Of a DNA stretch of 64,000 nucleotides, positions 6,100 to 48,995 are shown piece after piece; the stretch's first letter is position 1, and every line of letters starts with the position of its first letter. Both the position numbers and the translations under genes were made by a program. The notes beneath the pieces were generated by a model. That model worked only from the letters and a program-made list of their open reading frames with translations. It was not told the DNA's origin and searched no databases. The stretch is from Azolla caroliniana (Eukaryota; Plantae; Polypodiophyta): assembly GCA_043228905.1 (NCBI GenBank), contig JBHGNT010000010.1, forward strand, positions 13,516,001 to 13,580,000. Reading direction: 5' to 3'.

Positions 6100-6109
6100 A
6101 GGCCGGATA

Positions 6110-6150
6110 GTGGGATTCGACGTACAAGGTACTGTCCCACGGGCGTGCCA
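6110..6150 (+). other. tRNA-3'-half-like hairpin ending in CCA at the PPT position (inverted PBS)
   Basis: GTGGGA TTCGAC GTAC AAG GTAC TG TCCCAC GGGCGTG CCA directly abuts the LTR TG; no purine tract. Confidence 0.75.
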
Positions 6151-6826
6151 TGTCTTAGCCAGCCGGCAAGGAGTGGAGGACAGTTCAAAATGTGAAAGGG
6201 CAGGAATAATCGGAAGTTGTTGTTAGGATATTAAGTAATTAAGTAGATTTTGAGAAGTGAACGGACGGACCGGAATCGGTATGCCGATCCGGATCCGGGC
6301 CGGTTCATATTAGTGTGTCGGTTGGCACCGTTTTGTATGCAGAGCCGGTGATCTATAAAAAGGCCCGGTTACATTGTAAATGAGGACGGATAATTAATAA
6401 AGTCTATTGTCTTATCTCTGTGTATCGATTACCGTTCTGTGCTGATTACTTTCTATCTTACGCGTGTATTAGGATTCACGATATGTAGCTTAAGTAACCG
6501 ATAAAGGTCTGATTAATCGTTAGTCTAATGTCATGATATGGCAAGACTCAAACCCATGACCTTATGTTACATGGGTCAAGCTCTTACCATTAGACTATGA
6601 ATTGTAATACATAGGATATTATTTTCATTTATGCTTTATCATAGAAAATTGATGTATATTCCAGATCTCTCTGGAACATTCTAAAAGCTTCAGGATTATT
6701 CCTGAGAACACTATAAAAGAGGGCACTAGGCATTATGTTAAACCAAATTGGTTCAAACTGTCAGGAATAGTACTAAGCAGAGATGGACTTAGTACTAAAG
6801 AAGAGCAGTACTATTAGTACTAAGAG

Positions 6827-9800
6827 CATTTAATATAATTAGTAGTCCAGAGCATCCCATTGTCCTAGGATTACCTTGGTTTGAATTACATAATCCAGCC
6901 ATAGATTGGAGAACAAGAGAAGTCTGATATTGACCACCCCAAGAATCAACTCACCGAGTTTCGACCATTTCACTCCATCAACTACGCGAAGGACCCAAGG
7001 AGGCAATGTTCCTATTTGCCATATCAGTACATCCTTCCAACACTATTAAGAAGGACTCCTCAGTACAACTTTCGGCAAAATGTCATCCTTATGCCGATGT
7101 ATTTGACAAGGTAAAAGCCGGTACCCTTCCTCATCACCGTCTCTATGACTGTCCCATCGATTTACAACCAGGAACCGAGCCACCATGGGGACCAATTTAC
7201 AACTTGTCACCCACCGAGTTAGAAGTCCTTCGAGCCTATATAGAGGAGAACTTGGCAAGCGGGTTCATCCGTCATTCGAAATCTCCGGCCGGTGCACCCA
7301 TCTTCTTTGTCAAGAAGAAAGATGGCTCACTTCGTCTCGTCGTTGATTACCGCGGATTGAATAAAGTCACCATCCGGAATAGGTATGCACTTCCTCTTAT
7401 ATCAAATCTTTTAGAGCGAGTTAATGGTGCCAAGTTTTTTACTAAAATCGACCTACGAGGAGCGTATAACCTCGTGCGGATCCGACCGAGAGATGAATGG
7501 AAGACCGCCTTTCGCATGCGGTATGGGCATTTCGAGTATATTGTTATGTCGTTCGGCCTAACCAATGCACCCGCAGTCTTCCAACACATGGCAAATGATA
7601 TATTCAGAGACCTCTTGGATATTTGTTTGATCATCTATCTGGATAATCTATTGATTTATTCGAAGACCCAGGAAGAGCACGATTCTCATGTACTATTAGT
7701 ACTAAAGCGACTCCGCGCGAATGGTCTTTATGCCAAGCTAGAAAAATGTAGCTTTGACTACAAGCAAGTGGAATTTCTAGGCTACGTCATCTCCTCAAAA
7801 GGCATCGCCATGGATCTAGCTAAAATCCAAACTGTACTAGAGTGGCAAATTCCACGGTCGGTATGAGATGTACAATGTTTTCTATGTTTTGCTAACTTCT
7901 ACCGTAAGTTTATACAGGATTACTCGAAGATTATTTTACCTCTCACACAACTTACGAAGAAGGGCCAAGCATTTCTTTGGTCCATAGAAGCAGATATAGC
8001 TTTTCGGCATCTTAAGAAAGCCTTTACATCAGCACCGATTCTAGCTCATGTGGATACAAACAAACCATTCATCATCGAGATCGACGCATCAGATTTCGCC
8101 CTCGGTAGCATCCTTTCTCAACAAGGAGATAAAGAAGAGTTGCATCCGGTGGCTTTCCATTCGCGCAAATTTAATGTCGCAGAAATCAACTACGAAATAC
8201 ATGACAAAGAGTTATTAGCCATCGTGGATTCATTTGTGCAATGGCGGCATTTCTTAGAGGGCTCTCCACATCAGGTCATTGTCTTTAGCGATCATAAAAA
8301 TCTTGCTTATTTTCAGAATGCTCGCGTACTAAATCGACGGCAAGCTCGGTGGGCGCAATTCCTCACGTGTTTCGACTTCAAAATCACATATCGACCGGGG
8401 AAGCAGCAAGGAAAAGCAGATGCACTATCACGGCGGTCATATCTTGCACCTCGTCCTGGTGATGCAACATTTGATAATCAAAAGCAAGTAATCTTGGGAC
8501 CAACACGATTGCACACGACGCGGATTTTTCACACCCCGATGGATTCACGGATTACCGATGACATACGTGGAACCTTGAAGACGGATAGTTTTGCTCAAGA
8601 CATCCTGGAGCACATTGATACTTCTCGGGCATCCTGTTCTCAGTCTCAACAACCAGGTATTGACTACCGACAATTCGAATATCATGAGGGTTTGTTATTC
8701 TTTAAAAAGCGCGTATATGTCCCCGATTGCTCCTGTCGCCTTCAAATCGTCCAGCATTGTCACGACACCCATACGGCGGGACATTTCGGTAGTACTAAGA
8801 AGTTGGAGCTAGTGCAACGATCTTTTTGGTGGCCCCACATGCGCCGTTTTGTCGACGACTACGTTCGGACCTGTGATGCTTGTTGCCGAGCAAAGATGCC
8901 ACGACACCATCCATATGGCTTGTTGGAACCCTTACCGATTCCAAGTAAGCCATGGCAGTCTATTTGTCTTGATTTTATCACAGATTTGCCGGTCTCAAAG
9001 GGGTTCGATGCTATCCTAACCGTCGTCGATCGATATACGAAGATGGCACATTTTGTGCCGTGTACTAAAGCCATCACTAGCGAGGAAACCGCCGCCCTTG
9101 TTATGCGTGAGGTATTTCAGCATCATGGCCTCCCAGATAATATCATCAGTGACCGAGGACCGCAATTTGTCTCCAAATTTTGGCAGCATCTCATCAAGAT
9201 GCTCAAGGTCTCCTGCAACCTCTCCTCCGGCTACCATCCTCAGACCGACGGGCAGGCGGAACGAACAAACCAAACACTGGAGCAATATCTCTGGTGTTTC
9301 CTGAGTTATCAACAGGACGATTGGGCCGAGATTCTCCACTTTGCGGAGTTTGCGTATAATAATGCTATTCACTCCTCGACTCGGGTCTCCCCATTTTTCG
9401 CTTATACCGGTTCTCATCCTCGTTGGTCGGTGATCGACACCCCGGAGCTACCTACCAATCCTCGTGCCGGGGATCATTTGGAGAGACTACGCAAGATCCA
9501 GACAGATCTCTCGACTCATCTTCGTCATGCTCAACAAATGTAGAAGACTTACGCGGATCGTCATCGGCTTCCCTCTTTTGCCATCGGAGATCGAGTATGG
9601 CTCTTACGTCGTCACATCAAGACTACTCGACCGTGCGACAAGTTGGATTATCGACGACTCGGTCCTTTCCGTATTACGGGTAAGGTTAATGATGTCACAT
9701 TCCGCCTTGATCTCCCTCCGCAGCTTCAGATACATCCGGTTTTCCATTGTTCTCTTCTTGAACCTTATAAAGCAAACACCATTCCCGATCGTGTTACACC

Positions 9801-10601: not shown

Positions 10602-10954
10602 ACAATACAACACACGGCTTGCAGCCTGCTCCCACGCTGGGTAGTCGGCGTTTGTCGGGTTGGGTTGCATTTCTTGAGCTCCAGTATCCTTGTCCGACAA
10701 GGTACTAATGCATGTTGTACTCCCAAGATGCGAAATTTGTCTTGTCGTGCTTCTTCTTAGGAAGAGTGTTTCCCATCTGAGTATTCATAGTGATTTCTTC
10801 TCTATTAATAAGCCGGTTCAATTGATCGTCGGCGTGTACCACAACACAGTCGAATAGATTCGATTAAGCAACCACACGCTCTGATACCATGTAAAGAAAT
10901 GGAGTTGGGGGTGTAATGCAGCGGAAGATGATTGAGTGTGTGTGTGTGTACAAC

Positions 10955-11009
<55 letters not shown>

Positions 11010-11184
11010 CTCTTAACAAGAAAACTGTATAGTACTTCCAACAGTAACAAGGTTACAAAAGGTTGGTTTAAATACAAACTAAACTAGGGCAAGGGACCTT
11101 TCTACTATTTACAAAACTAGTATGATATGTCCATGAGCTACTGTGAAACCTATTTCTATGGGAAGTTGAGTTCGACTCTCAACA
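10602..11184 (-). mobile_element. 5' end of a minus-strand Ty1/Copia element (LTR 10890-11184, PBS 10878-10889, gag start); host of Gypsy A
   Basis: GCTCTGATACCA is the reverse complement of the tRNA-iMet PBS; minus-strand peptide ...DKTNFASWEY..H*YLVGQGYWS...DYPAWEQAASRVLYC is homologous to the gag at 41222. Confidence 0.85.
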
Positions 11185-22158: not shown

Positions 22159-23145
22159 ACTAGGAGTCATGGCGACAGAAGACCGAGTAGCTGGATGTAA
22201 AGACGACATTCCTACACAGAGATCTAGAAGAAGACATCTACATGTCTCAACCGGTAGGCTTCACGGCGACGAGGGAGGAAAGTCACCTCGTATGTCAACT
22301 GAAGAACAGTCTCTATGGCGTGAAATAAGCGCCGAGGATGTGGTACCAGAAGTTCGACTCCTACATCAGGCAGCTTGGATATCGCCGATCCGACTCTGAC
22401 ACCAGCACCGCTTAGAACGCCGATCTGACTATCGGACAAAGACTCTCCTTCAACGGACAAGGAGAGAGAGCTTAATGGAAAGATGCCCTATGCATCGGCC
22501 GTAGGAGGTATCATGTACGCAATGGTGGCGACCCGACCCGACCCGACCTAGCCTATGTCGTACGAGTGGTCAACCAGTACATGTCAAACCCAGGACGAAA
22601 GAATTGGGAGGCCGTCAAACACATCTTCAGGTACCTAAGAGGGACTGAAGATACACAGCTGACTTTTGGACTGACAACCTCAGCCAAAGTCGAAGGCTAC
22701 ATCGATTCCGACTATGCCGGGAACACAGACAATCGGAAACCGACATCAGATTACATCTTCACCTATTATGGCGGTTCAATATCATGGAGGTCCAAACTTC
22801 AAGAGTGCACGGCTCTATCGACCACAAAAGCCGAGTACATAGCAACATCGGAGGCAGCAAAGGAAGCGATCGGGTTACATCGACGGTCTACCACCTTCTC
22901 ATCTACAAGCCGAATCGACTAACCAACGCCGACCATCTATTGCGACTCGCAAAGCGCAATTCACCTCATTAACAATCCCGTCTATCATGCAAAGATGAAG
23001 CACATTGAGGTACGGTATCATCACATCCGGGAGCTTATAACTGAGAAGAGGCTCGAAGTCCGGAAGATCGACACCGAGGTGAACATCGCGAATTGCCTGA
23101 CAAAGCCACTCCCAAATCAACATTTCAGAGCACTAAGGACAAAGA

Positions 23146-23523
23146 TGTGTTGGCCGGTCAAGGGCCGAAGGACAAGTGGGAAAGCCGAACCGGATATATG
23201 TATATATAGTATAATTATTATTAGAATTATTATTCGGAGGGACGGATCCGGTACAGTTGTGCCGATCCGGATCCGGACCGATTCGGAGCCGGTTGCCTAA
23301 AGGGCACCATTTTGTAATATTGTCGGATGCCTATAAAAGGATCCGGAAGTAATACGAATTATACTGGAGCACTTATTCTGTATCTTTGCATCTATATTGT
23401 CTTACCGTCTGTGCTTATAATCCTTATCTTACGCGTGTGGTCTAACATCCTAACCTTACCACCCCTTTGGAGAAGTGTTCGGAAGGACACCTGTGTTGTG
23501 GCTAGTCCGACCAGAAGGCAACA
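23146..23523 (+). repeat. 5' LTR of Gypsy B
   Basis: Direct repeat of 38216-38613 with an ~20-bp indel after the TATA box. Confidence 0.93.
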
Positions 23524-23529
23524 CTATTT

Positions 23530-23539
23530 TGGCGACCAC
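23530..23539 (+). other. Primer-binding site, probably tRNA-Arg
   Basis: TGGCGACCAC, 6 nt after the LTR; matches plant tRNA-Arg(UCG)-type 3' ends as recalled, not searched. Confidence 0.6.
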
Positions 23540-25288
23540 GATTCCTGCAGAGTGCAGAGAACACCGAGGGATGGATGTCTAGACCGAACAGCGACCACAT
23601 TACTGAATGAGGGAGATGGTTCGCCAAACGACAACAACGACGGGAAGCCTTGCAGCAAGCGGCCGAGGAGATCCAGCAGGATCGGTCCTTTTCCAGAACG
23701 CTTCGGAGAGTCGCAGAAGAAGCATTGCAGTTCCGGAATCAACAATTCTCCGACGAAGGCAATAGCCTGACTATTCTGCAGGAAGCAAAATCAATACTAC
23801 AAGCGCTTGCCGGTGGCGACGGAGACGCAGGAGCATTCGCAAACCTAGAGTCGGATCCAGACAGCGAAGAGAGCGTTGCGTCACGGTATAAAAGCAGTCA
23901 CGACACCCCGAACGATCCGGAGGAAGACGGGTCGGACAACTCATTGACGCCGGAACCAACGGAAGAAATAACCTTGGAGTTCGGGGACCGGCAATCGCCG
24001 AGAGAGACTAATCGTATACCGACACCAGCTGCGGAGGAAGCGAAGGATCGTATACCGACACCACCCGCGGAGGAAGCAAGGAATCACACACCACCGAAAG
24101 AGCGGAGAGAGAGGGATACCCAGTCGAAACAACCAGATGACACCATGCCGTATCCTTACCCAAAATACCGGGATGATCCCGACGCGGAGGCTCATGTGTA
24201 CGCATTTCTCCAGACATGAGAAGCCAACCATGTCTCTTAGAGATTGATGGAGCCCGAGGCCAAGCGGTCCAAAGTCGCCGAATTCGGCATGACGCTGGAA
24301 GGACTGGCCGCTCGTTGGCATGCAAAACATTTACCCAGCAGCTTTGCCACATTCGAGGCCTTGAAGGCAAAATTCCTTCGGTTGTTCCATAGACAAGTAG
24401 AATAGAGGGAACTAGTCGGGCAATTCTATACCACACGACATGAAGAGCAGGAAACAATACCACAATTTATCATCCGGTTCCAGACCTTGCACAACCAGTT
24501 GACAAGAGCACCTCCCGAAGACGAAGCGAAAGCAGTATTTTTGGCTACATTAAGGGAACCACTTAGAACAATGTGCGGAGTTGTCGATTTCCGTACCAGC
24601 ACGGTGGACCAGGTCATTGACCGAGTACTAGAGATGGACAAAAACAGTTCATTCATGTCACTAGGAATGCTACACCAGGCTCTCCCGAAGGAAGAAGATT
24701 TGAGGTTCCGGCAAGCCCTGCAGTGCACAACGTGTCTCAATTCGGGCCACTCAACGGTCGACTGCACTATGCGCACACAGTGCATGATATGCCACTCTCG
24801 GGCACATACGATGGACCGATGCGAGTACAACTTGCTCAATCGGCAGGCGGCACCGGTCCGACACATAGAACCACGGAACAATCAGGACCCGGAAGAAGAC
24901 AAATTCGAGAGAGACGATCGCGACCAACGCGAGCGCGGCGACAGATACACTGATCGGCGACGTGAGGACTATGATCGCAACGAGAAACGCAGGGACGGCT
25001 ATCGCAGGGACCGGTATGAACGAGACGACTCCCTGGAATATGACCGACGTAGAGACGATAGACGTCAAGGGAACCGAAATTTCCGGCGAAATCAGAAGCG
25101 AGGGTTTTTTCACAGAGAGGAGTGCCAGGAGGCGGCGAGAGGCGGCGAGAGATAACAACCCAGTATCGGCACCAGAGAACCAGAAAACAGAAGACAACCG
25201 CCGGGTAATCTCCACCGGAAGCAAAGGAGAATCAAGTAACAACCACAAAGTATATTGTTACTACTGCCGAAAGGAAGGGCATTACAGT

Positions 25289-25914
25289 TGTTGGGATTTC
25301 GGTCCCTTTCGGATGGGATGGTCGGATATCGGAGATGAATGCCGACAAGCCCGGTTTCGGTTTCGGTTTCGGATCCGGATGACGAAGACCCCGGCTTCGG
25401 TGCCGGATGACGAATGTACCCGGAGAGCGATCCGGATGCAGGGACATATCCGTGAATATGTTCGCTACGAGCCCCCTGAGGCTATAGTTGTAAATAGCCC
25501 AAAGTCATATAAGTATAAATATGACTTAGGGCAAACAGTTTTTCTGTTGCTTCTCATTTTTCTGTTTTTCCACTTTAGAGGAGTGAAGAGAGAGCAGCCG
25601 TGAGAGAGAGAAAGAGAGAGAGCGCGAGAGAGAAAGAGGTAGACGCCTCTGTGTATTTCCGCCGCCTGTGGCGAGGACAGCGAGCTCAAGGTCGTCGCCT
25701 TGGAGCTCGTCATTGTATACTTCTCTGTATAGTGTTGTTTGGAGTCTTGTACTCCCGTGGTTTTTCCCCGTTTAGGGTTTTCCACGTTAATCCTTGTGTA
25801 CTCGCGTTTCTTCGTTTTGTTTCTACGTGTGTTTCCTATTTTCTGCTCCATTGATCCGCGATTAATCGGTTGTGGCCGAGATAAGAAGGTGGATAGAAGG
25901 GCCTATTCCTTACA
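25289..25914 (+). repeat. 5' LTR of Copia G
   Basis: TG...CA; appears identical to the 3' LTR apart from repeat copy number. Confidence 0.97.
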
Positions 25915-25943
25915 AACTGGTATCAGAGCGACTGTTGCAGAAA

Positions 25944-28900
25944 ATGGAAGGCGGCGGCAGCGGGCAGCCGATGATGATGGTGCTGAATGCACAGAATTAC
26001 GCCGACTGGAAGATCAAGATGGAGGATCTTCTGATTGTTCGGGACCTGTACGAACCGATTGACAGGTCGGAAATACCGAAGGGGGTACTTGAGTCGGAGT
26101 GGAAGCTCCTGAACCGGAAAGCCGTAGCGACGATCCGACAATATGTCGACGTAAGCGTCCTGCAACATGTGGCGAACGACACCAACGCATACGAGATGTG
26201 GAAGAAGCTGTCTGGCCTCTATGAGAGGAAGAATGCGTTGAACCGGACCTCCCTGATGAGGAAGATTGTGAATCTCAAGTATCGGGACGGCGAGAGTATG
26301 GTGGAACACGTAAGCACGTTCATGGGATTCGTGAACCAGCTTGCGGCGATCAAGTTCCCGTTGGAGGATGCAATGCAAGCCATCATCCTGATGTGTACAT
26401 TGCCGGAAAGCTGGGAGAACTTGGTGGTGACTCTCAGCACCTCGTGCACCGAAGATAACTTGTCCTTACAAACTGTAAAGACAAGTATTCTGAATGAAGA
26501 AGCGCGTCGGAGAGATAAGGAACCGGCCTCCGACCCGAAGATGCTGTTTACCGAATCGGATCGGGGAAGACAATGGAACCGGAGTCCGCAAAGACGGGAG
26601 AAGTCGGGGACCCGGTCGCAGTCAAGAGGAAGGCCCACATGCTTCCACTGTGGGAAGCCGGGGCACTTCCGAAAGAATTGTCGGCATTACCGAAAAGACA
26701 ACGGAGCCGACGACACCGACTCGAAGAAGTCACCGGAGAGAAACGGTGCATACCGGGGAGCCACGGACCGGAGAGGTTCGGATCGGCGAGGGCAAGACCG
26801 GAAAGGAACAACGGCACTCGCGGCAAGTGAGGAAGAAATCATGCTCATCACCGAAGAAGGTGAGCTAAACGTTGCCGGCGATGAGACGACCTGGGTGGTC
26901 GATTCCGGAGCATCGTTCCACCTGACCCCGGAGAGAAGATACTTCTCATCCTACACAGCCGGCGAGCATGGCTGTGTTCGGATGGGAAATGAAGGTACGT
27001 GCCGGATTGCCGGCATAGGAGACGTGTGGTTGACAACCCCGACCGGATGCAAAATGCTGCTGAAAGATGTCCGACACGTTCCGGAGGTCCGATTGAACCT
27101 GATTTCGGCCGGGAGGCTAGATGATGAAGGCTACACGGGTAGCATCCGGAACGGTGTCATGAAGTTCAGCAAGGGGAGCTTGATAGTGGTTCGGGCCCGG
27201 AAGGTCAACACACTGTACCTGATGAATGCCCGGTTATGTCCGGAAGAGCTGAATGTGGCAGCCGACACTGCCGGTGAGCTGTGGCACAAAAGACTGTGCC
27301 ACATGAGTGAGAAGGGGATGAAGAGGCTTGCAGAAGACAACCTCATCCCAGTGAAGCACGTGCACCTGGAGAAGTGCACCGATTGCCTGGCCGGTAAGCA
27401 GAACCGAACCTCCTTCCACTCAAGGCCACCGACGAGACGTAGCGCACCATTGGAGTTGGTGCACACTGATGTGTGTCAGGTAGAAACGAAGTCACATGGC
27501 GGAGCCCAGTACCTCGTGACATTCATTGATGATCACAGCCGGAAGCTGTGGACGGCACCGTTGAAGACAAAGGACCAAGTGTTGTCCGTCTTCAAAGAAC
27601 TCCACGCGAGAGTGGAAAGGGAATCCGGCAAGAAGCTGAAAGCGATACGAGCGGATAACGGAGGGGAATACCGGGGGCAGTTCCAGGAGTACTGTCGCTC
27701 GAAGGGAATCCGACTCGAGTTTACTGTGCCGAAGACGCCGGAACTGAATGGGCTGGCCGAGAGGATGAACCGGACCATAATGGAGCGGGTCCGGAGTATG
27801 CTGGCGCATGCGAAATTACCCAAGGGGTTTTGGGCTGAGGCAATGTCGACGGCGACATACGTGATAAACAGATCACCCTCAGTACCTTTGGACGGAGACA
27901 CGCCGCAGAGAGTGTGGACCGGTAAGGAAGTGTCCTACCGGCATCTGAAGGTGTTCGGGTGTCTCGCATACGTGCATGTGGCAAAGGACCGGAGAGGAAA
28001 GCTAGATCCGAAGACCCGGCCATGCATATTCCTCGGTTACGGCGACGACGAGTTCGGCTACCGAGTATGGGACCCGGTCGACAAGAAGATATTCCGGAGT
28101 CGTGATATCATCTTCATGGAGAACAAGACGCTCGCCGACTGGGAGTCGGAGAAGAAGATGAAGAGCTCCAAGTCGACCGGTGAGGATCAACTCTACAAGG
28201 AGCAGTCCCGACCGGCAAGGGACCGGTTAGCACTCGAGGATCCGGCCGAAGACAGTGAAGACACAGAACCGGCCGAAGAAGATGAAAATGATACCGGAAC
28301 CGGCCCCGATCCCGAAATGGTCTCGGATGAAGAAGAATCGGAAGAACCGGTTACCGAAGCTCCGGAACGGAGATATCCTCTAAGAGAGAGAAGGGCCCCC
28401 CGGAGATTTCCGGAACCAGAGCACGTGCTGCTAACCGACGAGGGGGAGCCGGAGAGCTTTGAAGAAGCGAAGCATGACACCCAGAGCCGCAGGTGGTTGA
28501 GTGCCATGCAGGACGAGATGGATTCCCTGCATGAGAACCACACATATGAACTTGTGGAGTTGCCGAAGGGAAAGCGGGCACTTCGAAACAAGTGGGTGTT
28601 CAAGCTGAAACCGGGAGATGCCGGAAACCCCCCGAGATACAAAGCCAGGATCGTGGTGAAGGGGTTTCAGCAAAAGAAGGGCGTCGACTTCGACGAGATA
28701 TTTGCCCCGGTAGTGAAGATGACCTCCATCCGGACGGTGCTGAGCATAGCGGCAAGCATGGACCTCGAGGTAGAACAGATGGACGTGAAGACAGCATTCC
28801 TTCACGGTGACCTCGAAGAAGAAATCTACATGCAGCAACCGGAAGGATTCGAGAAGAAAGGGAAGGAGCACCTGGTATGCCGGTTGAAGAAGAGCCTTTA

Positions 28901-30017
28901 CGGACTGAAGCAGGCTCCCCGGCAATGGTACCGGAAGTTCGACTCCTTCATGACCGACGAAGGGTACCTCAAAACGCAGTCCGACCACTGCGTGTTTGTG
29001 AAGAAGTTTGAAGGAGGAGACTTCCTAATACTCCTCCTGTACGTGGACGACATGTTGATCGTCGGACGGGACCAGGTCAAGATACGGATGCTGAAGAAGG
29101 CTCTTCACCGAACCTTCTCAATGAAGGACCTGGGTCCGGCGAGGCAAATACTAGGGATGCACATCATCCGGGACCGGAAGAAGAAGCAGTTGTGGCTGTC
29201 ACAGGAGAAGTACGTGACAAAGGTGCTTCAACGGTTCAACATGTCGGAAGCAAGACCGGTCGGATCGACCCTCCCGGCAAACTGCAAGCTGACCAGCAAG
29301 CAAAGTCCCAAGACAAAGGCTGAAAAGGAGGATATGATGGAAGTGCCGTATGCCTCAGCCGTCGGGAGCTTGATGTACGCCATGGTGTGTACGAGACCGG
29401 ACATAGGATATGCAGTCGGAGTGGTGAGCCGGTACATGAGCAATCCCGGCAAAGAGCACTGGAACGCGGTCAAGTGGATACTCCGATACCTGAAGGGCAC
29501 GGCAAACATGTGCCTCCGTTTCGGCTCCGGTAAGCCCGAACTCGAAGGCTTTACTGATTCTGATATGTCGGCTGATGCAGATACCAGCCGGTCCACATCA
29601 GGGTATGTGATGACGTATGCAGGGGGAGCTGTTTCGTGGCAGTCGAGGCTGCAGAAGACGGTTGCGTTGTCAACCACGGAGGCGGAGTACATGGCGGCTG
29701 TTGAAGCCGGCAAGGAAATAATATGGATGAAGGACTTCATTAGAGAGCTCGGTATCCGGCAAGAGGAGTACCGACTCTACTGCGACAGTCAGAGTGCCAT
29801 CCACCTTGCGAAGAACGCAGCCTATCACTCCCGGACGAAGCACATCCAGCGAAGATATCACTGGATCCGGGAAAGGATAGAAGACAAGGAGTTCGTGCTG
29901 ACGAAGATCCACACCGACGAGAACGGGTCGGATATGCTGACCAAGGTGCTCACACCCGACAAGCTGGAAGCATGCCGGAAGAGGATCGGATTGGAAAGAC
30001 ATCCCATGCCGAAGTGA
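25944..30017 (+). CDS. Copia G Gag-Pol polyprotein (1357 aa): gag, CCHC, protease, integrase, RT, RNase H
   Basis: ATG 15 nt after the PBS; CFHCGKPGHFRKNC, WVVDSGAS, LWHKRLCH, DNGGEY, NGLAERMNRT, LLLYVDDML, FTDSD, TKHI. Confidence 0.97.
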   Translation: MEGGGSGQPMMMVLNAQNYADWKIKMEDLLIVRDLYEPIDRSEIPKGVLESEWKLLNRKAVATIRQYVDVSVLQHVANDTNAYEMWKKLSGLYERKNALNRTSLMRKIVNLKYRDGESMVEHVSTFMGFVNQLAAIKFPLEDAMQAIILMCTLPESWENLVVTLSTSCTEDNLSLQTVKTSILNEEARRRDKEPASDPKMLFTESDRGRQWNRSPQRREKSGTRSQSRGRPTCFHCGKPGHFRKNCRHYRKDNGADDTDSKKSPERNGAYRGATDRRGSDRRGQDRKGTTALAASEEEIMLITEEGELNVAGDETTWVVDSGASFHLTPERRYFSSYTAGEHGCVRMGNEGTCRIAGIGDVWLTTPTGCKMLLKDVRHVPEVRLNLISAGRLDDEGYTGSIRNGVMKFSKGSLIVVRARKVNTLYLMNARLCPEELNVAADTAGELWHKRLCHMSEKGMKRLAEDNLIPVKHVHLEKCTDCLAGKQNRTSFHSRPPTRRSAPLELVHTDVCQVETKSHGGAQYLVTFIDDHSRKLWTAPLKTKDQVLSVFKELHARVERESGKKLKAIRADNGGEYRGQFQEYCRSKGIRLEFTVPKTPELNGLAERMNRTIMERVRSMLAHAKLPKGFWAEAMSTATYVINRSPSVPLDGDTPQRVWTGKEVSYRHLKVFGCLAYVHVAKDRRGKLDPKTRPCIFLGYGDDEFGYRVWDPVDKKIFRSRDIIFMENKTLADWESEKKMKSSKSTGEDQLYKEQSRPARDRLALEDPAEDSEDTEPAEEDENDTGTGPDPEMVSDEEESEEPVTEAPERRYPLRERRAPRRFPEPEHVLLTDEGEPESFEEAKHDTQSRRWLSAMQDEMDSLHENHTYELVELPKGKRALRNKWVFKLKPGDAGNPPRYKARIVVKGFQQKKGVDFDEIFAPVVKMTSIRTVLSIAASMDLEVEQMDVKTAFLHGDLEEEIYMQQPEGFEKKGKEHLVCRLKKSLYGLKQAPRQWYRKFDSFMTDEGYLKTQSDHCVFVKKFEGGDFLILLLYVDDMLIVGRDQVKIRMLKKALHRTFSMKDLGPARQILGMHIIRDRKKKQLWLSQEKYVTKVLQRFNMSEARPVGSTLPANCKLTSKQSPKTKAEKEDMMEVPYASAVGSLMYAMVCTRPDIGYAVGVVSRYMSNPGKEHWNAVKWILRYLKGTANMCLRFGSGKPELEGFTDSDMSADADTSRSTSGYVMTYAGGAVSWQSRLQKTVALSTTEAEYMAAVEAGKEIIWMKDFIRELGIRQEEYRLYCDSQSAIHLAKNAAYHSRTKHIQRRYHWIRERIEDKEFVLTKIHTDENGSDMLTKVLTPDKLEACRKRIGLERHPMPK

Positions 30018-30027
30018 AGGGGGAGTT

Positions 30028-30675
30028 TGTTGGGATTTCGGTCCCTTTCGGATGGGATGGTCGGATATCGGAGATGAATGCCGACAAGCCCGGTTTCGGT
30101 TTCGGATCCGGATGACGAAGACCCCGGCTTCGGTGCCGGATGACGAAGACCCCGGCTTCGGTGCCGGATGACGAATGTACCCGGAGAGCGATCCGGATGC
30201 AGGGACATATCCGTGAATATGTTCGCTACGAGCCCCCTGAGGCTATAGTTGTAAATAGCCCAAAGTCATATAAGTATAAATATGACTTAGGGCAAACAGT
30301 TTTTCTGTTGCTTCTCATTTTTCTGTTTTTCCACTTTAGAGGAGTGAAGAGAGAGCAGCCGTGAGAGAGAGAAAGAGAGAGAGCGCGAGAGAGAAAGAGG
30401 TAGACGCCTCTGTGTATTTCCGCCGCCTGTGGCGAGGACAGCGAGCTCAAGGTCGTCGCCTTGGAGCTCGTCATTGTATACTTCTCTGTATAGTGTTGTT
30501 TGGAGTCTTGTACTCCCGTGGTTTTTCCCCGTTTAGGGTTTTCCACGTTAATCCTTGTGTACTCGCGTTTCTTCGTTTTGTTTCTACGTGTGTTTCCTAT
30601 TTTCTGCTCCATTGATCCGCGATTAATCGGTTGTGGCCGAGATAAGAAGGTGGATAGAAGGGCCTATTCCTTACA
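30028..30675 (+). repeat. 3' LTR of Copia G
   Basis: Follows the PPT; matches the 5' LTR. Confidence 0.97.
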
Positions 30676-33600
30676 ACAGTAACCAATGCCCGATCAAAAC
30701 AAACGATAAGCAGCCGACAGTCAATATGGTCATGGCTGAGGTGACCGACGTTCAGCAGGTAACAACCCGGTCGAAAGGGAAAGCTGCAAAATGGGAAGCC
30801 CAGGAGGCAATCCGAAAGCAGGCATCGGAATGGGTTAAAAAGGCCAACGAACAGAACATGGCGGAGATAACAAACCAGAATACGCAGCTTGAGGAAGCAG
30901 TCACGCAACCGGAGGACAACCCAATGTGGCAAGCACTACAAGATTGTCAGATCATGCTACCATTAGCACGTCTGCTCCAGTTGGTACCACGATTCACAGC
31001 GGATCTACAGGCAACCGTCATCAAACCAAAGCCAGCGCCGGCACCGGCGTTTTTCTCCAACCCGGAAGAAGGACCGACCGTGGTGGACACAAGCAGCCCG
31101 ACAATCACACTAATTGTGAAGGGCAAGGAAATCGCCGGAACGATCATTGACGGAGGATCAGGAATAAACGTCGTCAATCGACGAACATGCGACAACTTGG
31201 GCATCTGAGAATGGGAGCCGTGTCCCTTCTGGTTACGCATGGCAGATACCAATTCGGTCCGACCAACCGGGCTTATCCGGGACCTGGAGGTCACAGTCGG
31301 GGGCCACGTATTCCGCATATCGGCCGTGGTGCTGCAACTAAATGTGCAAGGAGCATACCCTCTACTGTTGGGACAACCATGGCTACGAACAACACATATT
31401 AAACAAAATTGGCAAAAGAATATTATCACATTCCGGCGTGGGAAGACGAAGGTACGTGTGGCTACACAGCCGCGGGCAATCACCAGTAAAGAAGCGACCC
31501 CACTATATGCAGAGAGTATCAACATGTTGGAAGGGTTGCCAGACAAGGAGATCGATCGTTATATGGAGGAACACCCGAAGATCTTACCACTCTTTGAGGT
31601 CGACATCACGGCAGCTATCGGACCATATATCACTACTCCGGAACCGGACGAGCCGGATCAGGCAACAATCTGAGAGTTGCGCCAAGCATAGGAGTCACTT
31701 GAGAGGGAAATGACGATATCACAGAGAGTAAAAGCGTCCCAGTTGGAGGAGGTGGACCTCGGAATGATGGACAAACCAAGGCCGGTAAAAGTGGCAACGG
31801 AATTGCCGGACAAAGAGAAGAAGGCAATGGTCTCTTTATTAACAGACTTTCGGGACATATTCGCATGGTCGTACGAAGACATGCGAGGGCTGGACCCCCA
31901 GCTGTATCAACACCAAATTCACCTCAGTACAGATGCTAAACCAGTAGCACAACAAAGGTACCGCATGAACCCAAATTATGCGGCAAAGGTCAAAGAAGAA
32001 ATTGACAAGTTGCTCAGGGTCAGGTTCATCCGACCAGTGAAGCAGGCAACCTAGTTAAGCCCGATAGTGGTCGTTCCAAAGAAAAACGGCAAGATCCGGG
32101 TGTGCGTGGATTACCGGAAGTTGAACGCAGCCACGGTAACCGACGCGTTCCCATTACCGTTCACGGACGGGGTACTGGATGCGGTTGCCGGACACGAGGT
32201 CTACAACTTCCTAGACGGATTCAATGGTTACAACCAGATTCGGATGCGCCCGGCTGACCAGGAAAAGACGGCCTTCATTACAGAATGGGGGGTATTTGTG
32301 GCGGTAGTAATGATGGTCGGGTTAAAGACGGCCCTAGCAACGTTCCAGCAGATCATAATGGAGATATTTGGAGAGTACATCCCTAGGTTTATGCAGGTGT
32401 TCCTCGACGATTTTGCGGTATACAGCCTGCAAACGGAACACCTCGACCACCTTCGGTTATGCCTAGAAAAATGCAATGAATACCAACTGAGCTTGAACCC
32501 AGCCAAGTGTGTCTTTGGAGTAGCAAGCGGCAACCTATTAGGACACGTGGTTAGCAAAGAAGGGATCATTGTGGATCCGGACAAGGTAAGAGAAATCCTC
32601 GAGGCACCAGCACCAAACAACGCGAAAGCCCTAAGTCGGTTCTTGGGGAAAATTAGGTGGCACAGCCGGATGATACGACACCTTGCAAATTTTGCTACAC
32701 CACTTCATGCCGTAGTACACCGGATGCCCTTTCAGTGGGCAGAAACCGAGGAAAAAGCATACCAAGCGTTGAAGGTAATGATATCACAAGCTCCGGTGGT
32801 GCAACCTTCGGATTGGACGAAGAGTTTTCATGTCTTCGTAGATGCGTCGGACATCGCAATAGGAAGTGTCTTAATGCAGCTAACTAAGCCGAAGTGGTAC
32901 CGGCCGGTTTACTACGCCAGCCGGAAGCTCTCGAAAGCGGAACGGAATTATTCCACAACGGAAAGGGAAGCCTTAGGCATGGTATACAGTGTCACGAAAT
33001 ACCGACACTACTTACTAGGAAGAAAGTTCTCCTTCCACGTAGATCATTCGGCACTATTGTACTTGGTCTCGAAGGCATCGCTGACCGGTAAAATCGCAAG
33101 GTGGACGTTGCTGCTTCAAGAATTTGAATTTGATATCTTCCACCGACCTGGGGTGCAGCACGCGGTGGCCGACTACCTAAGCAAACTCGAATCCGGAGAA
33201 GTGGGCAACGGCGTACAAGAAGAGTTTCCCGATGCCAAATTGTTCCGAATAACGATGGAACCAGCCACAGATGCAACAGTTGCCGAGGAGGACAAGTGGC
33301 TAACCGATATGCACCAATTCTTGAGCACCGGATTACCTCTTGAGAACATGAATTGGGACGAGCGGAAGCGTGTGGTGGTCCAAAGCAGGCACTTCTGTCT
33401 GGTCAGGGACACCCTCTACCACAAGGGGGCGGACGGTATCTGGCGACGAACAATGCGGAGCGACAAAAAGGAGATGATCCTAAGGGAAGCTCACTGCGGT
33501 ATAGCTGGAGGGCATTATGCCGGAGAAGTAGAAGCCCGAAAAATATGGCAAAGCGGGTTATGGTGGCCAACCACCCTCAAGGATGCCATCAGGTATAGTA

Positions 33601-35081
33601 AAGAATGCGATCTATGTTAGCGACTGGGTCAACCAACGGAGCAGGCCCAAATGCCTCACCACCTAGTCTTGCCTCTGGAGCCATTTTAGAAATGGGAACT
33701 AGACTTCGTCGGTCCATTTAAACCCCCAGCGATGAGAACCAGGAATCGGTACATCATAGTGGCCACCGATTACTGCACAAAGTGGGTCGAAGCGAAGGCA
33801 TTGAGAGATAACACGGCCGCTTCCACAACAAAATTTTTGTATGAATGCATATGGTGCCGATATGGTTGCCCGATCGAGTTGATAAGCGATCAAGGAGGGC
33901 ATTTCCTTGGGCAAGTAGTGGAAAGCTTGACGTTGTTCTATGCGGTGGTGCACAAACGAAGCACACCTTATTACCCGCAGGCCAACGGATTGGCTGAATC
34001 AACCAACAAAACCCTACAAAATATTTTACGGAAAATTGTCAATGAGAATCGGACAGATTGGAACACGAAGCTGCAGAGCGCACTTTGGGCATACCAGACA
34101 CCGTACAAGACCAGCATCCAGACAACCCTGTTCCGATTGGCATTCGGATTGGAAGCAGTGATGCCGGTAGAGTTTCAAATTCCAAGTTTACAGATACAGG
34201 TGAAGGAACCCTTGAGCAAGAAAGAGTTCGAGAAAATTCGGCTGGCAACATTGTGCGAGTTAGAGGAAAACCGAATAGCAAGCTTGCTACAGCTTGAGCT
34301 CGAACAACGGAGAAGGAAGGCATTCGTAGACCGACATCAGAGAGGCAATGAAAAGGAATTCGAAATCGGAAAACCGGTCCTACTATTCCAAACCCGAATG
34401 AGCAACATGCCGGGAAAGCTACGGTTTCGGTGGACCGGACCGTTCTGGATTACGAAAGAATATAATGGGTCGTATCAGCTCGGCACGCTAGCAGGCGAGA
34501 TCATCGGAAAATGGGCAAACGGATTCCGGTTGAAGCCCTACAAAGGACGCATGCCGGCCAACCCATTTCAGAAGAACGAGGACTCACAAGATCCGGAAAA
34601 CCGGCAGGAAGAAGGTCCGGCACCAGATATAACCAATCCGGGATGCCCGGATACAATCGACAACTAACGTAACAAATTTCGAAAAAATAAAATAAAATAA
34701 AATAAATAAATAAAAAGAAAAAGAAATACAGACGTAATTATGAGGGAGAATGGAAAAGGTGGGAGCGCCAGCAATTAATTTAAAAAAGTTTAATGAAATG
34801 CCGGCAGTTATTAAGTGAAAAGGTGGGGGACTTGCTATTTAAAGCCTAGCCACTAAAAACGAGGCGAAGGACACATACTAATTATGGCAAGAGGTATGCA
34901 TGCGCGGGAATCAAGAAACGACGGCTCGAGGAGAATGAACCTACAAAAGGCAAAGGCGTGTGAAGGAATCACATTTCGTTAATTTTCTTTGAAGCAGGCA
35001 CGAGAAAATGGGAGAGCACCCAGACGCACAGAGCTCAGCGTCAACACTGACCAGCACACCCACGAGGAAGACACAGGTCCC

Positions 35082-38000
35082 ATGGCGCTCTCAGAGGAAG
35101 CAAGACAATGGCTGACAGAAAACGGGTTGGAAGGGTTTCTGCAAATCGCCGATGCACCACCGCACGTTGAACTGGAGCAGGCAGCCGCAACCATCGATCT
35201 GTCTGAGATCACAGAAGGCGCGGTGCAGGCGCTCACAGGGCTACAGGCGGGAGGATTGCGATCAATAGAGTGCCCCTCCACCAAATCTTGTTCGAGTACT
35301 TCGGGGAGTACTCTCTGAGTAGCAAGGCATACCGAACGCAAGGGGGACAAAACTTGTTATTCGGGGAAGTGGCCCGCGCAATGATGGAATACGGGTTTGT
35401 ACACCCTCGTCCCCTAGCCATACCAAAGTACTGGGCCGGGTTCGTGATCGTGGCATATGAAGGGCTGAGGGTGGACTGGCTCCACTTCATCACCGAAGGC
35501 TTGAAGGACGCGATCGGGAACCTAGTGGAAGGAAAGAAATCATGGGCCGGGATAGCGCAGTGGCTGACTGTGTTGGTCCCACCTATTCTCCCCATCAAGC
35601 AAAAGAAAAGGGGTCGCCAGGAGACGACACCAAAGAAGACCGCGAAACTCTGATAGCTCCTGGAGAAACATACCCCAGGATGGACTCAGGAGGAGGACGA
35701 ACAGCTGGAAGAAGGGCCATCCAAACGGCAACCAGAACAGGCGTGAAAAGCAAAACCGGCGAGGAAAGGAAAAGAAAAATCGGCGAAGAAGACCACCCGC
35801 ACATAGGAGCTAGCCAAAGAAGAGCCGGTGGTGCATAAGCCGATCAAAATAGCAGTGCGAAGGCCAGAACTTGAACTAGTGGACTTTGTACGAAAGATCC
35901 GTCTGGGAACCACCACGGAGGAGGAGGCTGCGGAGGAGGACTCGGTTGAGCCATTGGAAAGACATGCACCAACGCGGGGTCGGGAGCAACAGGAGAAAGA
36001 ACCGGCTCCACCAGTTGGCGGCACTCAGCAACGGGCAACTGAACCGGCTCCACCAGTTGGCGGCACTCAGCAACAAGCGAAGGGACCGACTCCAATAACC
36101 GAGGAGGTAGGGGAACAGGAAGAATCAAGGGCCGCACAAAAAGAGGTAGCACTCAAACATATGTTGCCAGATGACGGCCAAGAACAGGTTTTGCCGGACT
36201 TCGCCAGCGAACAAATCTTCCCGGACTTGGGAAGTGAACAAGTCCCGGAACCGGAAACAAGTGCAAGGCAGCCGGAGGGAAGACAAGAGCAACAATCGGA
36301 ACCACAGAGCGGGAGCGCGCAAAGCACCCTGACTGAAGGAGAGAATGGACTAGAGAATAGCACGATGCAACAGTGGTTGAGAGGGCTCTCAAAACAAGTG
36401 TCGGGGGTAGCAGACCAACTGGACGGGGAAGAGAGGCATAGGGAATACCTTACGCGGACAACGACAGAAGAATTGGTCTCGCTCCGAACGTAGATCCAGG
36501 GGTTGCAAGAGGAGTTGACGAAGGCAAAGGAAAGAGCGGCCAATACGGCCACAGTGGGCCAACAGGCACAGGTCGTCACCGAGCCGGTCGGGACAACAAG
36601 GAAGAAAGCCACCCCGGAACCGGTGGAAGGAGAGGCCTTGCAAACCGGCCCTAAGTCTGCAAAAATAATAGCAACTTTACGAGAAGAGTTGAGGGCTCGA
36701 GAGGCGTTGAGGGAGAAGGAAAGAGAACAACGGAAGTTGGCGGAAGAAGAAAGGTGGAGGATGGAAGGAAGCCTTCGAAAAAGCCAGGCCAACAACGACC
36801 GATTGAAGGAAGGAAGAGACAAGCTACAGCAGGACAAGGATAGACTGCGCCGGCATGCCGAAACGGAAATAGAACATCTCAAGGAAGAACTCCGGCAACA
36901 AAAGGATCGGGACGACCGGTTGCATGCTCAGGTAAACTGACGCTTGAAACAAAAAACTGAGGATTTTGACAGGTTGTATCGGGAGCACAAGCAAGCCGAG
37001 TCGGATTACAAAAAACGGGGAGTGGAGTTCGACCGGCAGATGGAAAAGTTAAAGGAGCAGCTGAAAGAGACCCGGTTGGATCTTGCCAAGACAATGGACG
37101 AATTAGATGTAAAGAAGGAAGCGTTGTCGGTAGAGAAGACCGAAGCGGTGGAATGAGTAAAGCAGTTGGAAGCAGCGGCAAAGGAGAAGTTGGAGCTCAC
37201 CAAGACCCGGAATGAAGAGAAGGAACGGGCAACATACGCACTCAACAAACTGAGGGATACATATGAAAAGAAGGCAATGGAGTATGAAAGCCAAGCCCAG
37301 GCCGCTGCTGCAATTATCGTACGATTGAGGCAGGAAAAGCAAGAGGCTAATGCATGTGCTCAATTGGGGGTGGACCGGATCCAACTCATCATGTCGGCAT
37401 GGAGGGACCGAGCTCAGAACAACATCAATGAATGTTCTGAGAAGGTATGGAAGGAGTGGTCACAACAAGCAGCAGAGTTGCAAACACTCAACAAACTGAG
37501 GGATACACTCAACATACGCACTCAACAAACTGAGGGATACATATGAAAAGAAGGCAGTGGAGTATGAAAGCCAAGCCCAGGCCGCTGCTGCAATTATCGT
37601 ACGATTGAGGCAGGAAAAGCAAGAGGCTAATGCATGTGCTCAATTGGGGGTGGACCGGATCCAACTCATCATGTCGGCATGGAGGGACCGAGCTCAGAAC
37701 AACATCAATGAATGTTCTGAGAAGGTATGGAAGGAGTGGTCACAACAAGCAGCAGAGCTGCAAACACTCCGGGCTGATGCAGAGAACCGGATGAAGGCAG
37801 GTGACAAATTCTATAAGATGGATGAAGAAAGCATTGTCACCATTCGGGAAGAACTGTCAAAGGATTTCTTCGCTTTAGCAGAAGAACATCTAAAGGAGAT
37901 CCGGGGGTTGGTGGAAAGATTGGATGACGGACAACCCGAAACTTAGTTGGAGTTCGAGAAGTACGAGCAGGACCGTCAACAACAAGAAGCCGAGGGTAAG

Positions 38001-38167
38001 ACAACGCCCATCACAATAAGCGATGAGGACAGGCAAAGGCAGATGAACCGGAGCAGCAACCAATCCAACCGGAACTCGGAAGGGAGACAGGGACAGAACA
38101 GGAAATCGGGGAGGCGCCACTTGATACCTTCGAGTAAGGTCTGCTCGATATTTTGGAGGAAGAATGA
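35082..38167 (+). pseudogene. Extra 3' ORF of Gypsy B (homolog of 3214-6099)
   Basis: MALSEEARQWLTENGLEGFL vs MTLSEAAKKWLKQHGLEGFL; YFGEYSL.SKAY.TQGG; AQWLT.L.PP; AETEIE.LKEELRQQK; LRAD.ENR...GD.FYK. Confidence 0.8.
37231..37769 (+). repeat. ~259-bp tandem duplication (period 280) with a 21-bp templated filler
   Basis: 37231-37489 is repeated at 37511-37769; the peptide EYESQAQAAAAII...ELQTL is duplicated. Confidence 0.95.
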
Positions 38168-38175
38168 GGCCGTGT

Positions 38176-38215
38176 GTGGGTTCGAAGTGCAAGGCACTTT
38201 CCCACGAGCGTGCCA
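38176..38215 (+). other. tRNA-3'-half-like hairpin ending in CCA at the PPT position (inverted PBS)
   Basis: GTGGG TTCG AAGTGC AAG GCACTT T CCCAC GAGCGTG CCA directly abuts the LTR TG. Confidence 0.75.
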
Positions 38216-38613
38216 TGTGTTGGCCAGTCAAGGGCCAAAGGACAAGTGGGAAAGCCGAACCGGATATATGTATATATAGTATAATTATTATTAGAATTAT
38301 TATTCGAAGGGACGGATCCGGTACAGTTGTGCCGATCCGGATCCGGACCAATTCGGAGCCGGTTGCCTAAAGGGCACCGTTTGTAATATTGTTGGATGCC
38401 TATAAAAGGATCCGATTGGATGTAATGATCTTACAAAAATAATACGAATTATACTGGAGCACTTATTCTGTATCTTTGCATCTGTATTGTCTTACCGTCT
38501 GTGCTTATAATCCTTATCTTACGTGTGTGGTCTAACATCCTAACCTTACCACCCCTTTGGAGAAGTGTTCGGAAGGACACCTGTGTTGTGGCTAGTCCGG
38601 CCAGAAGGCAACA
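38216..38613 (+). repeat. 3' LTR of Gypsy B
   Basis: Direct repeat of 23146-23523. Confidence 0.93.
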
Positions 38614-38991
38614 AGATGGGACTATGATAAGCAACCGAGCAAAAGAAAGCCAAACAAGGAGGAAAAGGTAAGACTTGATCAAATCAATCATTATAATGAG
38701 CCATTCTAGGCTCAACACAGACCTCACCTATGCTGACTCGACTATATGTCAACCGACTTGTAACATAAATTTAGATTATTGTTGTAATCTAGGTTTACGA
38801 GGGAGACAACCCCAAACACATGCATATGTAGGAAAGAGTAGTCCTTTTACATGGGAGTTTATTGGCATAAAAGGCCGACTCCTTCCACTTTGTATCCTAG
38901 TGTGAATTCGTCCATATAGTTAGGGCTTAGTATATAAGCAACAACCTAACGTTGTAAAGAGATATCTCTTGATCATCCTGTACATTGAGTC

Positions 38992-39056
<65 letters not shown>

Positions 39057-39203
39057 AAGACAAAGACAAAGACAAAGACAGAGAGAGAGAGAGAAAGACA
39101 AAGACAAAGACAGAGAGAGACAGAGAGAATGTAATAGAGCTTCCATTAAAGCTTCAATCCATGTATATCTTTGCTCTTTCTTTTTTTTGTGTTGTTTTCT
39201 GAG

Positions 39204-39451
39204 TCAGATCCTCATACGTTTCCACATACACTTACGCTTCATGAACACCCCTCCACCTACTATAGTAACTAATGTGCCATTCCCTGTAGTTAAGAGGTGA
39301 TTGTAGAAAGAGAATATAAAGAGAAGGTGACTATATAAGCACCTTCCCACCTTATTTGTAACGTTGGTCATTCTTGTAATCTTCTTTTTGATAATATAGT
39401 CTTTACTTGTTTTTCGTATACTCGAGCTCTCTCTCTCACTCACTCACTCTC

Positions 39452-39529
<78 letters not shown>

Positions 39530-39566
39530 CTCTTCTGTTGCACATAATCACTCTTGGTTCCTTACA
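39204..39566 (+). repeat. Copia-type LTR remnant; left boundary approximate
   Basis: Resembles 45487-45866 (agaaggtga.ta.ataagcaccttc...(CT)n(CA)n...ttaca). Confidence 0.6.
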
Positions 39567-48147: not shown

Positions 48148-48612
48148 TCACTCTCTCTCTCTCTCTCTCTCTCTCCAACCACTCATTTTTAATAGGCACC
48201 TTTTTGTTTTCGTCTGCTCTCTCTCTCTCTCTCTCTTTATGCGTGAATGCGGCACGCTCTGGAACTTGGGTTCCTGACCTCTGCTGCTCAACGAGGAAAA
48301 ACCATCTCCAAGTAGAAACTTAGGGAGACGAGAGAGAGAGAGAGAGAGAGAGAACACATCTGTACTGATGGATACTGTTGTCGAAAGGAAGCGAGGGACT
48401 CTCTCTCTCTCCCTCTTCGTCTTTTACAAACTCACACAGAAACTGAGTCACTCTCTCTCTATTCTCTCGTTTCACACACACAAGCTCTCTCTCTCTCTCT
48501 CTCTCTCTCCCCTTCCATCTCAGTGTCTTGTCACTGCTAACGTTTGTCTTTCTTGTCCATGTTAACGTTTGTCACTCTTTGTCAGCTGTGTGCGTACATT
48601 GCGAGAGAGAAT

Positions 48613-48662
<50 letters not shown>

Positions 48663-48995
48663 ACTTCATTTGTTTTTTTGTTGGCGTTGCATTCCATTCA
48701 AAGCAAGCCAAGCGCGAGTATATAATTTTCTGCTACATCCATATCCATTCCTGCTACTCCTCTCTGCTCATAAGGCCGGGACGGAGAGCAGCCAATCAAT
48801 GAACTCTGAATAATGGTGGTGCATTCTCATGCCCCCTCTTTTCTCTCTCTCTCTCTCTCTCCTTTACTTTTTCTTTCTCAGACCGACTGACTAACTACGG
48901 CCTACTTAATTACCCCTCCCCCTTCTTTCTCAAGCTGTCGTGTACTTCCTTCTATGTGTTCTATATTTGTGTGTGTGTGTGAGAGAGAGAGAGAG
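48148..48995. repeat. Cluster of (CT)n/(GA)n microsatellites upstream of the AP2 gene (promoter/5' UTR)
   Basis: At least eight GA/CT tracts in both orientations. Confidence 0.9.

Follow-up and report, generated by a model that had tools for sequence, protein, structure and literature searches.

A module matching the 3' end of tRNA-Arg(UCU) occupies the place of the polypurine tract in a lineage of fern Ty3/gypsy retrotransposons

A 40-nt module that ends in a tRNA-like CCA was found next to the 3' LTR of element B, a Ty3/gypsy retrotransposon in a 64,000-nucleotide stretch of the Azolla caroliniana genome (the window). The module stands where a polypurine tract (PPT) normally lies, and it is best read as a putative cis-acting replication signal that stands in for the PPT within a single clade of fern Ty3/gypsy elements lacking a chromodomain. 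Its location and conservation point to an apparently undescribed route of plus-strand priming. In the established scheme (PMC5371799), minus-strand synthesis in retroviruses and LTR retrotransposons begins from a tRNA bound to the primer-binding site (PBS), and plus-strand synthesis begins from the PPT, a purine tract that resists RNase H; where the plus-strand primer ends decides the boundary of U3.

Element B is bounded by direct LTRs with TG...CA ends (TGTTGG...GGCAACA), the 5' LTR at 23148-23523 and the 3' LTR at 38218-38613, both on the plus strand. The two LTRs align with ~92% identity and one 21-bp indel. They are flanked by a perfect 5-bp TSD, AGATG, and its identical plus-strand copies at 23143-23147 and 38614-38618 set the LTR ends. 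Six nucleotides after the 5' LTR lies a TGG-initiated PBS-like site, TGGCGACCACGAT (23530-23542, plus strand), as an earlier note on this DNA had described. Remnants of RT, RNase H and integrase were detected at 32067-34667 on the plus strand (Pfam RVT_1, RT_RNaseH, RT_RNaseH_2, Integrase_H2C2 and rve), and the gag/PR part is split to both sides of a nested copia element at 25288-30676. The gene order gag-PR-RT-RNase H-IN was obtained from Pfam matches to the fragments of B and to the intact element L084, and in both the Pfam search returned neither a chromodomain nor an extra RNase H. By LTR/TSD structure and gene order, element B is a Ty3/gypsy (Metaviridae) LTR retrotransposon, but one without a PPT. 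It is an old, broken copy, as seen from its LTR divergence, the nested insertion, stops and a mutated module tail.

The nested copia-type element has an open 1381-aa ORF and LTRs that are ~96% identical. It serves as a control within the window, as it carries an ordinary PPT, GAAGTGAAGGGGGAG; its PBS, TGGTATCAGAGC, we take to be of the initiator-Met type. The internal region of element B closes with a decayed extra-ORF region (35828-38167, plus strand), in which a 280-bp tandem duplication with 99% identity was observed at 37230-37769. The region ends at the homologous stop TGA at 38165-38167, 8 nt upstream of the module. The earlier note had given the same distance; the frame of element B itself has an earlier TAA at 38135-38137.

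An exact search located the module once in the window, at 38176-38215 (0 occurrences expected by chance), so that the tRNA-like CCA motif reported earlier before the 3' LTR is both present and unique there. It is composed of a 5' part, GTGGG-TTCGA (38176-38185), a 13-nt insert, AGTGCAAGGCACT, which forms a mini-hairpin with an AAG loop (38186-38198), and a 3' part, TT-CCCAC-GAGCGTG-CCA (38199-38215, with the CCA at 38213-38215), all on the plus strand. Since the TSD is perfect, the true LTR start of element B is 38218 and the CCA lies 2 nt upstream of it, separated by the spacer TG (38216-38217, plus strand). The CCA is thus at the junction, as had been claimed, but it does not abut the LTR. 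An LTR alignment that apparently starts at ATG-TGTT is explained by the 5' flank of element B, which ends in ATG. The module has no copy in the 5' LTR and ends 2 nt outside the 3' LTR.

The arrangement CCA-NN-TGTT was found in all four elements with TSD-defined LTRs (B, L002, L110 and L113); in the latter three the spacer is also 2 nt long and reads AG. The first two bases after the CCA differ by family (TG, GG, TA, CG or AG), and conservation ends at the CCA. In some families, in which the LTR start is not fixed by a TSD, the distance from CCA to TGTT is 4-5 nt. The TSDs of L110 and L113 are TGTAG and CCAAG, respectively. Three of the four TSD-defined elements (B, L110 and L113) have a TSD whose final two bases are the same as their 2-nt spacer, and in L113 the TSD as a whole reads as the CCA followed by the spacer. 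This match may be due to chance or to a target preference, and it recalls the primer-homology insertions reported in integrase-independent Tf1 events (PMC11042837).

No PPT adjoins the LTR at this site, neither in element B, as noted earlier, nor in its relatives: the longest purine run within the last 30 nt was 4 in 90 of the 91 related junctions. The TSD leaves no room for the alternative that the LTR begins further upstream, after a purine tract. The purine-rich stretch GGAGGAAGAATGAGG at 38156-38170 was considered as a PPT and rejected; it lies 45 nt upstream and belongs to the coding end of the extra ORF (conserved ...LDILDEE*), and it is not present in the AT-rich short families. The A and B types of element both conserve a short downstream frame that ends in ...LDILDE(E/D)*.

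The module was compared with a tRNA-Arg(UCU). ARAGORN identified a complete tRNA-Arg(UCU) with CCA in contig L003 (1190-1265), where it occupies, in antisense, the PBS position of a short element with the module, and it is therefore taken to be a read-through cDNA of the primer tRNA. The reference used here is this transposon-borne copy and not an annotated host gene. The copy looks as if reverse transcription had proceeded through the whole primer tRNA instead of halting after 18 nt. Aligned to it, the module comprises tRNA positions 49-76 (T arm, 3' acceptor strand and CCA) with the 13-nt insert after A58 and minus one C. The 5' part of the module corresponds to positions 49-58, that is, the 5' strand of the T-stem and the first five T-loop bases, and is identical at 10 of 10 positions in element B; the insert is missing in the tRNA, and the 3' part corresponds to positions 59-76 minus the one C. 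The resemblance to a tRNA-Arg 3' half, which the earlier note had put forward, was borne out at positions 49-58 and 66-76, and a tRNA that ends in GGGCGTG-CCA does exist. Judged by these matches, the module is derived from the 3' 28 nt of mature tRNA-Arg(UCU), including the CCA that is added post-transcriptionally.

The tail has the lineage consensus CGGGCGTGCCA, which is the sequence of the final 11 nt of mature tRNA-Arg(UCU), CCA included. In the last 11 nt of the element B module the sole mismatch to the tRNA is a G>A at 38207, a position at which G was read in 73-96 contigs per run in four organisms. As A>G at 38207 is the only common variant in the module, the A is private to element B. 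The contiguous complementarity to the tRNA is limited to 11 nt by the missing C, which is at the short end of PBS lengths, and in element B it is reduced to 8 nt by the change at 38207. When an inverted PBS is defined by at least 10-12 nt of contiguous complementarity and 0-5 nt from the LTR edge, the consensus shows 11 nt and a 2-nt spacer. The tail is invariant among families with RTs that are only ~50-80% identical, and in this it behaves like a PBS, which is tied to a host tRNA, and not like a PPT. The tails of the Adiantum and L110 modules differ at 1-2 positions, with a G>T among the changes in Adiantum; for L110 the differences are compatible with CpG decay of old copies.

A full tRNA gene or cloverleaf at this site was considered and rejected: only positions 49-76 are present, ARAGORN detected no tRNA in the window, and Rfam on 38100-38260 (E<=10) gave chance matches only, without a tRNA match. 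A tRNA-Arg(ACG) gene without an encoded CCA was observed in contig L103 (131-203), ~1.6 kb from a module; this contig had ~100x coverage.

The 40-nt module folds as a two-part hairpin (-26.1 kcal/mol, z = -3.2). The mini-hairpin, which the earlier note had placed in the T-loop, was found there between A58 and position 59, and its pairing is conserved. Across 73 distinct junctions the inner hairpin exchanges CG/AU, UA/GC and GC/AU, with 53 doubly changed cells compared to 16.7 +/- 2.8 in shuffles, and none of 500 shuffles reached this number. Controls with slid partners gave far fewer doubly changed cells than the true hairpin pairing, and RNAalifold independently predicted the same inserted hairpin. 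As the search pattern had fixed the tail and the 3' strand of the T-stem, the covariation result refers to the inner hairpin only. The minus strand of the hairpin also folds as DNA. Mismatches in the hairpin (7 G-T versus 8 A-C) do not separate a plus-strand RNA fold from a minus-strand DNA fold. In single-sequence folds the Adiantum modules were no better than shuffles. A full acceptor/T minihelix was also considered and rejected, as an upstream partner (GGCC/GGCA pairing with TGCC) is present in some families and missing in the AT-rich ones.

The same module is present in element A of the window at 6110-6150 on the plus strand (covariance model, 67 bits), followed by TG and then by the 3' LTR of A from 6153. 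The pol region of element A (67-2576) is ~70% identical to that of element B. Its module is identical to the tRNA at 27 of 28 positions and has compensatory differences in the small hairpin with respect to element B. When contigs of four organisms were placed on 37800-38650, the bins at 38177-38234, which hold the module and the LTR start, reached depths of 58,000-281,000, and the neighboring internal bins a few hundred to a few thousand. Of the runs found to contain the stretch, none was an RNA run. A metagenome scan with one pattern, in which the hairpin arms were left free, recovered the module in 107 contigs from 14 ENA assemblies; these represent 91 distinct junctions from many families. 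A scan of viral contigs for the motif found none. Two elements of Adiantum nelumboides, with RTs that are 52-54% identical, carry versions of the module, and a recognizable version is present in L110, an element from an ENA assembly with an RT that is 59% identical; in both cases the T-loop inserts are shorter or different.

Short non-autonomous families (L003, L054, L005 and others) retain only the LTR, the PBS and the module. In L054 (1209-1955) two modules lie 721 bp apart in the order module-LTR-internal-module, here the LTR passes straight into internal sequence without a PBS, and the whole represents an array, tandem or deleted, of a miniature non-autonomous family. Element L084 is intact and has four open ORFs: gag-PR (gag and aspartyl protease in Pfam), RT-RH (RVT_1 and RT_RNaseH), IN (Integrase_H2C2 and rve) and an extra ORF of 969 aa between integrase and module (5641-8550). 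The product of this last ORF looks folded in its N-terminal part and also contains a long stretch of disorder and a long coiled coil. It had no match in Pfam and weak leads only in the Atlas (plant mobile domain), and nothing links it to priming.

Ordinary purine tracts were found exactly where the module sits, together with the same LTR ends, in L001 and L114 from the liverwort Riccia and in a third element, L111. L001 and L114 share the PBS type TGGCGACCACGAT with one change, and the PBS-like site of L111 differs. A quick RT tree of 18 sequences groups all module carriers into a single clade (SH-aLRT 99) that does not include the Riccia elements. The comparison of PPT and module is made without two further close relatives, L115 (P0159) and L116 (P0157), whose contigs are too short or have no second LTR. 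An objection foreseen in the earlier note, that intact relatives might have a normal PPT at this site, does not hold within the lineage, where the relatives carry the module and no PPT. On this distribution, the module is a lineage feature and not an accident of element B.

The PBS that serves the minus strand is of more than one type in this group. The type TGGCGACCACGAT also occurs in many module-bearing contigs and in Adiantum L002, and a near-identical PBS is listed as Arg or Trp in a HERV paper. Several module-bearing families have the PBS TGGCACGCCCGG, which matches tRNA-Arg(UCU) over 12 nt. This PBS and the full-length read-through copy of the tRNA indicate that elements of this group do employ tRNA-Arg(UCU) as a primer.

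From the position and conservation of the module, the plus-strand primer probably ends at or next to the CCA. In the standard model of reverse transcription, U3 begins on its left where the plus-strand primer has its 3' end; under this model the primer would end ...CGGGCGUGCCA-3'OH. A CCA that lies 2 nt from the LTR has the spacing expected of a plus-primer end followed by trimming by integrase. Retention of the module by the short non-autonomous elements marks it as a requirement in cis and counts for a replacement of the PPT.

The earlier note had left two sources open for such a primer, a host tRNA and the RNA of the element. We give almost an even chance to host tRNA-Arg(UCU) annealed to minus-strand DNA. 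After removal of the template RNA by RNase H, the minus-strand complement of the T-arm and insert region would fold into a hairpin of its own, and the complement of the 11-nt tail would stay open. Packaged host tRNA-Arg(UCU) could then anneal to this open complement via its unwound 3' acceptor strand and be extended from its natural CCA end into U3-R-U5, after which integrase would remove the 2 extra bases. Both DNA strands would in this way be tRNA-primed. The host tRNA is favored because the tail and CCA are identical to the tRNA across very divergent families, as is the behavior of PBSs, because the tRNA itself would supply the primer end so that no precise cut is needed, and because tRNA-Arg(UCU) serves as a primer in the group. 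The conserved 5' half of the T-arm and the hairpin speak against it, as they are not needed if a tRNA 3' end simply anneals; their conservation suggests that the RNA (or DNA) fold itself may be recognized. The wider proposal, that this is a monophyletic fern Ty3/gypsy lineage in which both strands are primed by host tRNAs, the minus strand at a conventional PBS and the plus strand at an inverted site derived from tRNA-Arg(UCU), is tentative and stands somewhat below an even chance.

The second source, a tRNA-mimic primer made from a piece of the RNA of the element itself, as is the case with a PPT, we consider rather unlikely. The GC-rich hairpin would snap back after minus-strand synthesis and leave the 10-11-nt tail alone hybridized; RT would treat this tail as a tRNA/PBS initiation complex, and RNase H or a host tRNA 3'-end enzyme would cut after the CCA. 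Such a primer would account for the conservation of structure beyond the tail, that is, the covarying hairpin and the retained 5' half of the T-arm, for the one-base deletion and the insert, which are inherited and were never 'corrected' to the tRNA sequence, and for the location of the module at exactly the place of a cis primer. However, it requires a precise endonucleolytic cut after the CCA, although the bases that follow vary between families, and it leaves unexplained why the 11-nt tail and CCA are identical to a host tRNA despite ~50% RT divergence. Moreover, no full acceptor-stem partner is conserved upstream, so that host tRNA 3'-end enzymes are unlikely to recognize the module.

It is improbable that the module has another role in cis and that the plus strand is primed by unrelated means. 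Candidate roles include pairing with the PBS or with the 5' acceptor strand of the primer tRNA, which would bridge the genome ends as in the bipartite PBS of Ty3, and also packaging, dimerization, and recruitment of ArgRS or tRNA. Such a bridge has a counterpart in the tRNA-related second PBS segment near the 3' end of Ty3 (PMC5371799), and the module tail shows 11 nt of complementarity to the PBS in those families whose PBS is TGGCACGCCCGG. The PBS TGGCGACCACGAT of A, B and many others is, however, not complementary to the module, and bridging therefore fails for A and B. The module also has the same sense as the tRNA, which makes T-arm pairing of the Ty3 kind impossible; no other primer candidate adjoins U3, and the purine tract of the PPT-bearing relatives lies at the exact site of the module. 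That the module is a passive tRNA fragment without function, for which the age and decay of element B could be cited, or that a mis-set LTR boundary hides a normal PPT, is contradicted by the TSD-fixed boundaries in four elements, by the coverage, which is highest at the module in the runs of four organisms, by the covarying hairpin and by retention in minimal non-autonomous elements.

Several known systems use a primer of their own or a tRNA-like end. Tf1/Sushi elements self-prime the minus strand with the 5' end of their RNA, and the Mauriceville retroplasmid of Neurospora and plant viral RNAs have tRNA-like CCA ends at the RNA 3' end, where they act as the start site on the template. These are precedents for an own primer or a tRNA-like CCA end in replication; in contrast to the retroplasmid and viral ends, the module would be an internal plus-strand primer site and not a template start at an RNA 3' end. 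With the PPT of retroviruses and LTR retrotransposons such as Ty3 (PMC5371799), the module shares its place, a couple of nucleotides before the integrated U3, and presumably its job, which is to start the plus strand and so define the left LTR end; like a PPT it is required in cis and kept by non-autonomous derivatives. Unlike a PPT, it is not purine-rich (longest run 4), it is tRNA-derived with a CCA end and a covarying hairpin, and its sequence is near-constant between families, whereas PPTs differ by family. Read on the minus strand, the module resembles a PBS: a TGG 2 nt from the LTR edge leads into sequence complementary to the 3' end of a tRNA, the site is invariant, and tRNA-Arg(UCU) is the PBS partner in some families of the group. 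It differs from a PBS in its location at the opposite end of the element and in its reversed orientation, which would let a tRNA pair with minus-strand DNA only and not with genomic RNA, and in keeping the 5' half of the T-arm and the inserted hairpin.

The bipartite PBS of Ty3, in which a second tRNA-binding segment is located in the 3' U3 (Gabus et al., 1998, as cited in PMC5371799), is a further case of a Ty3/gypsy genome with tRNA-related sequence close to its 3' end. The segment of Ty3 has complementarity to the T arm of the tRNA and is found inside U3, alongside a normal PPT; the module is in tRNA sense, outside the LTR and without a PPT. Helenus TRIMs are LTR elements with a tRNA-derived sequence as well; their LTRs have a tRNA-like part, likely a Pol III promoter, and PBS and PPT are retained (Kojima, 2024, PMC10886601). 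Compared with Helenus and TRIMp3, the module comprises the 3' 28 nt with CCA only, outside the LTR and in the place of the PPT.

If the proposed function is true, a successful high-copy lineage would have swapped its PPT for a tRNA 3' end, and plus-strand initiation would be able to evolve. To our knowledge, there is no exception to the purine-tract start of the plus strand among retroviruses and LTR retrotransposons. The literature searched, with most subscription journals outside it, yielded no description of a PPT replaced by a tRNA end; a survey of plant LTR elements (PMC6317226) and the Retand paper (PMC11963269) mention the PPT generically only. The lineage would also provide a natural system where an insert and a difference of one base reveal the origin of the primer. 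For annotation, the module is a sharp 40-nt lineage marker, and it explains why tools that depend on a PPT will fail with fern elements of this lineage. PBSs are known targets of small RNAs derived from tRNA 3' ends, which raises the question whether such RNAs can act on these elements at a second site too.

Further observations were made on the surroundings of element B in the window. Another copia-like element hosts element B in the C-terminal region of its pol (22950-23147 and 38614 onward); the reading frame of the host element ends ...NCLTKPLPNQHFRALRTK exactly at the insertion site. Long (AG)n, (CT)n and (AC)n microsatellites lie beside several of the transposon insertions, at 10932-11023, 38954-39137, 39400-39566 and 48444-48677.
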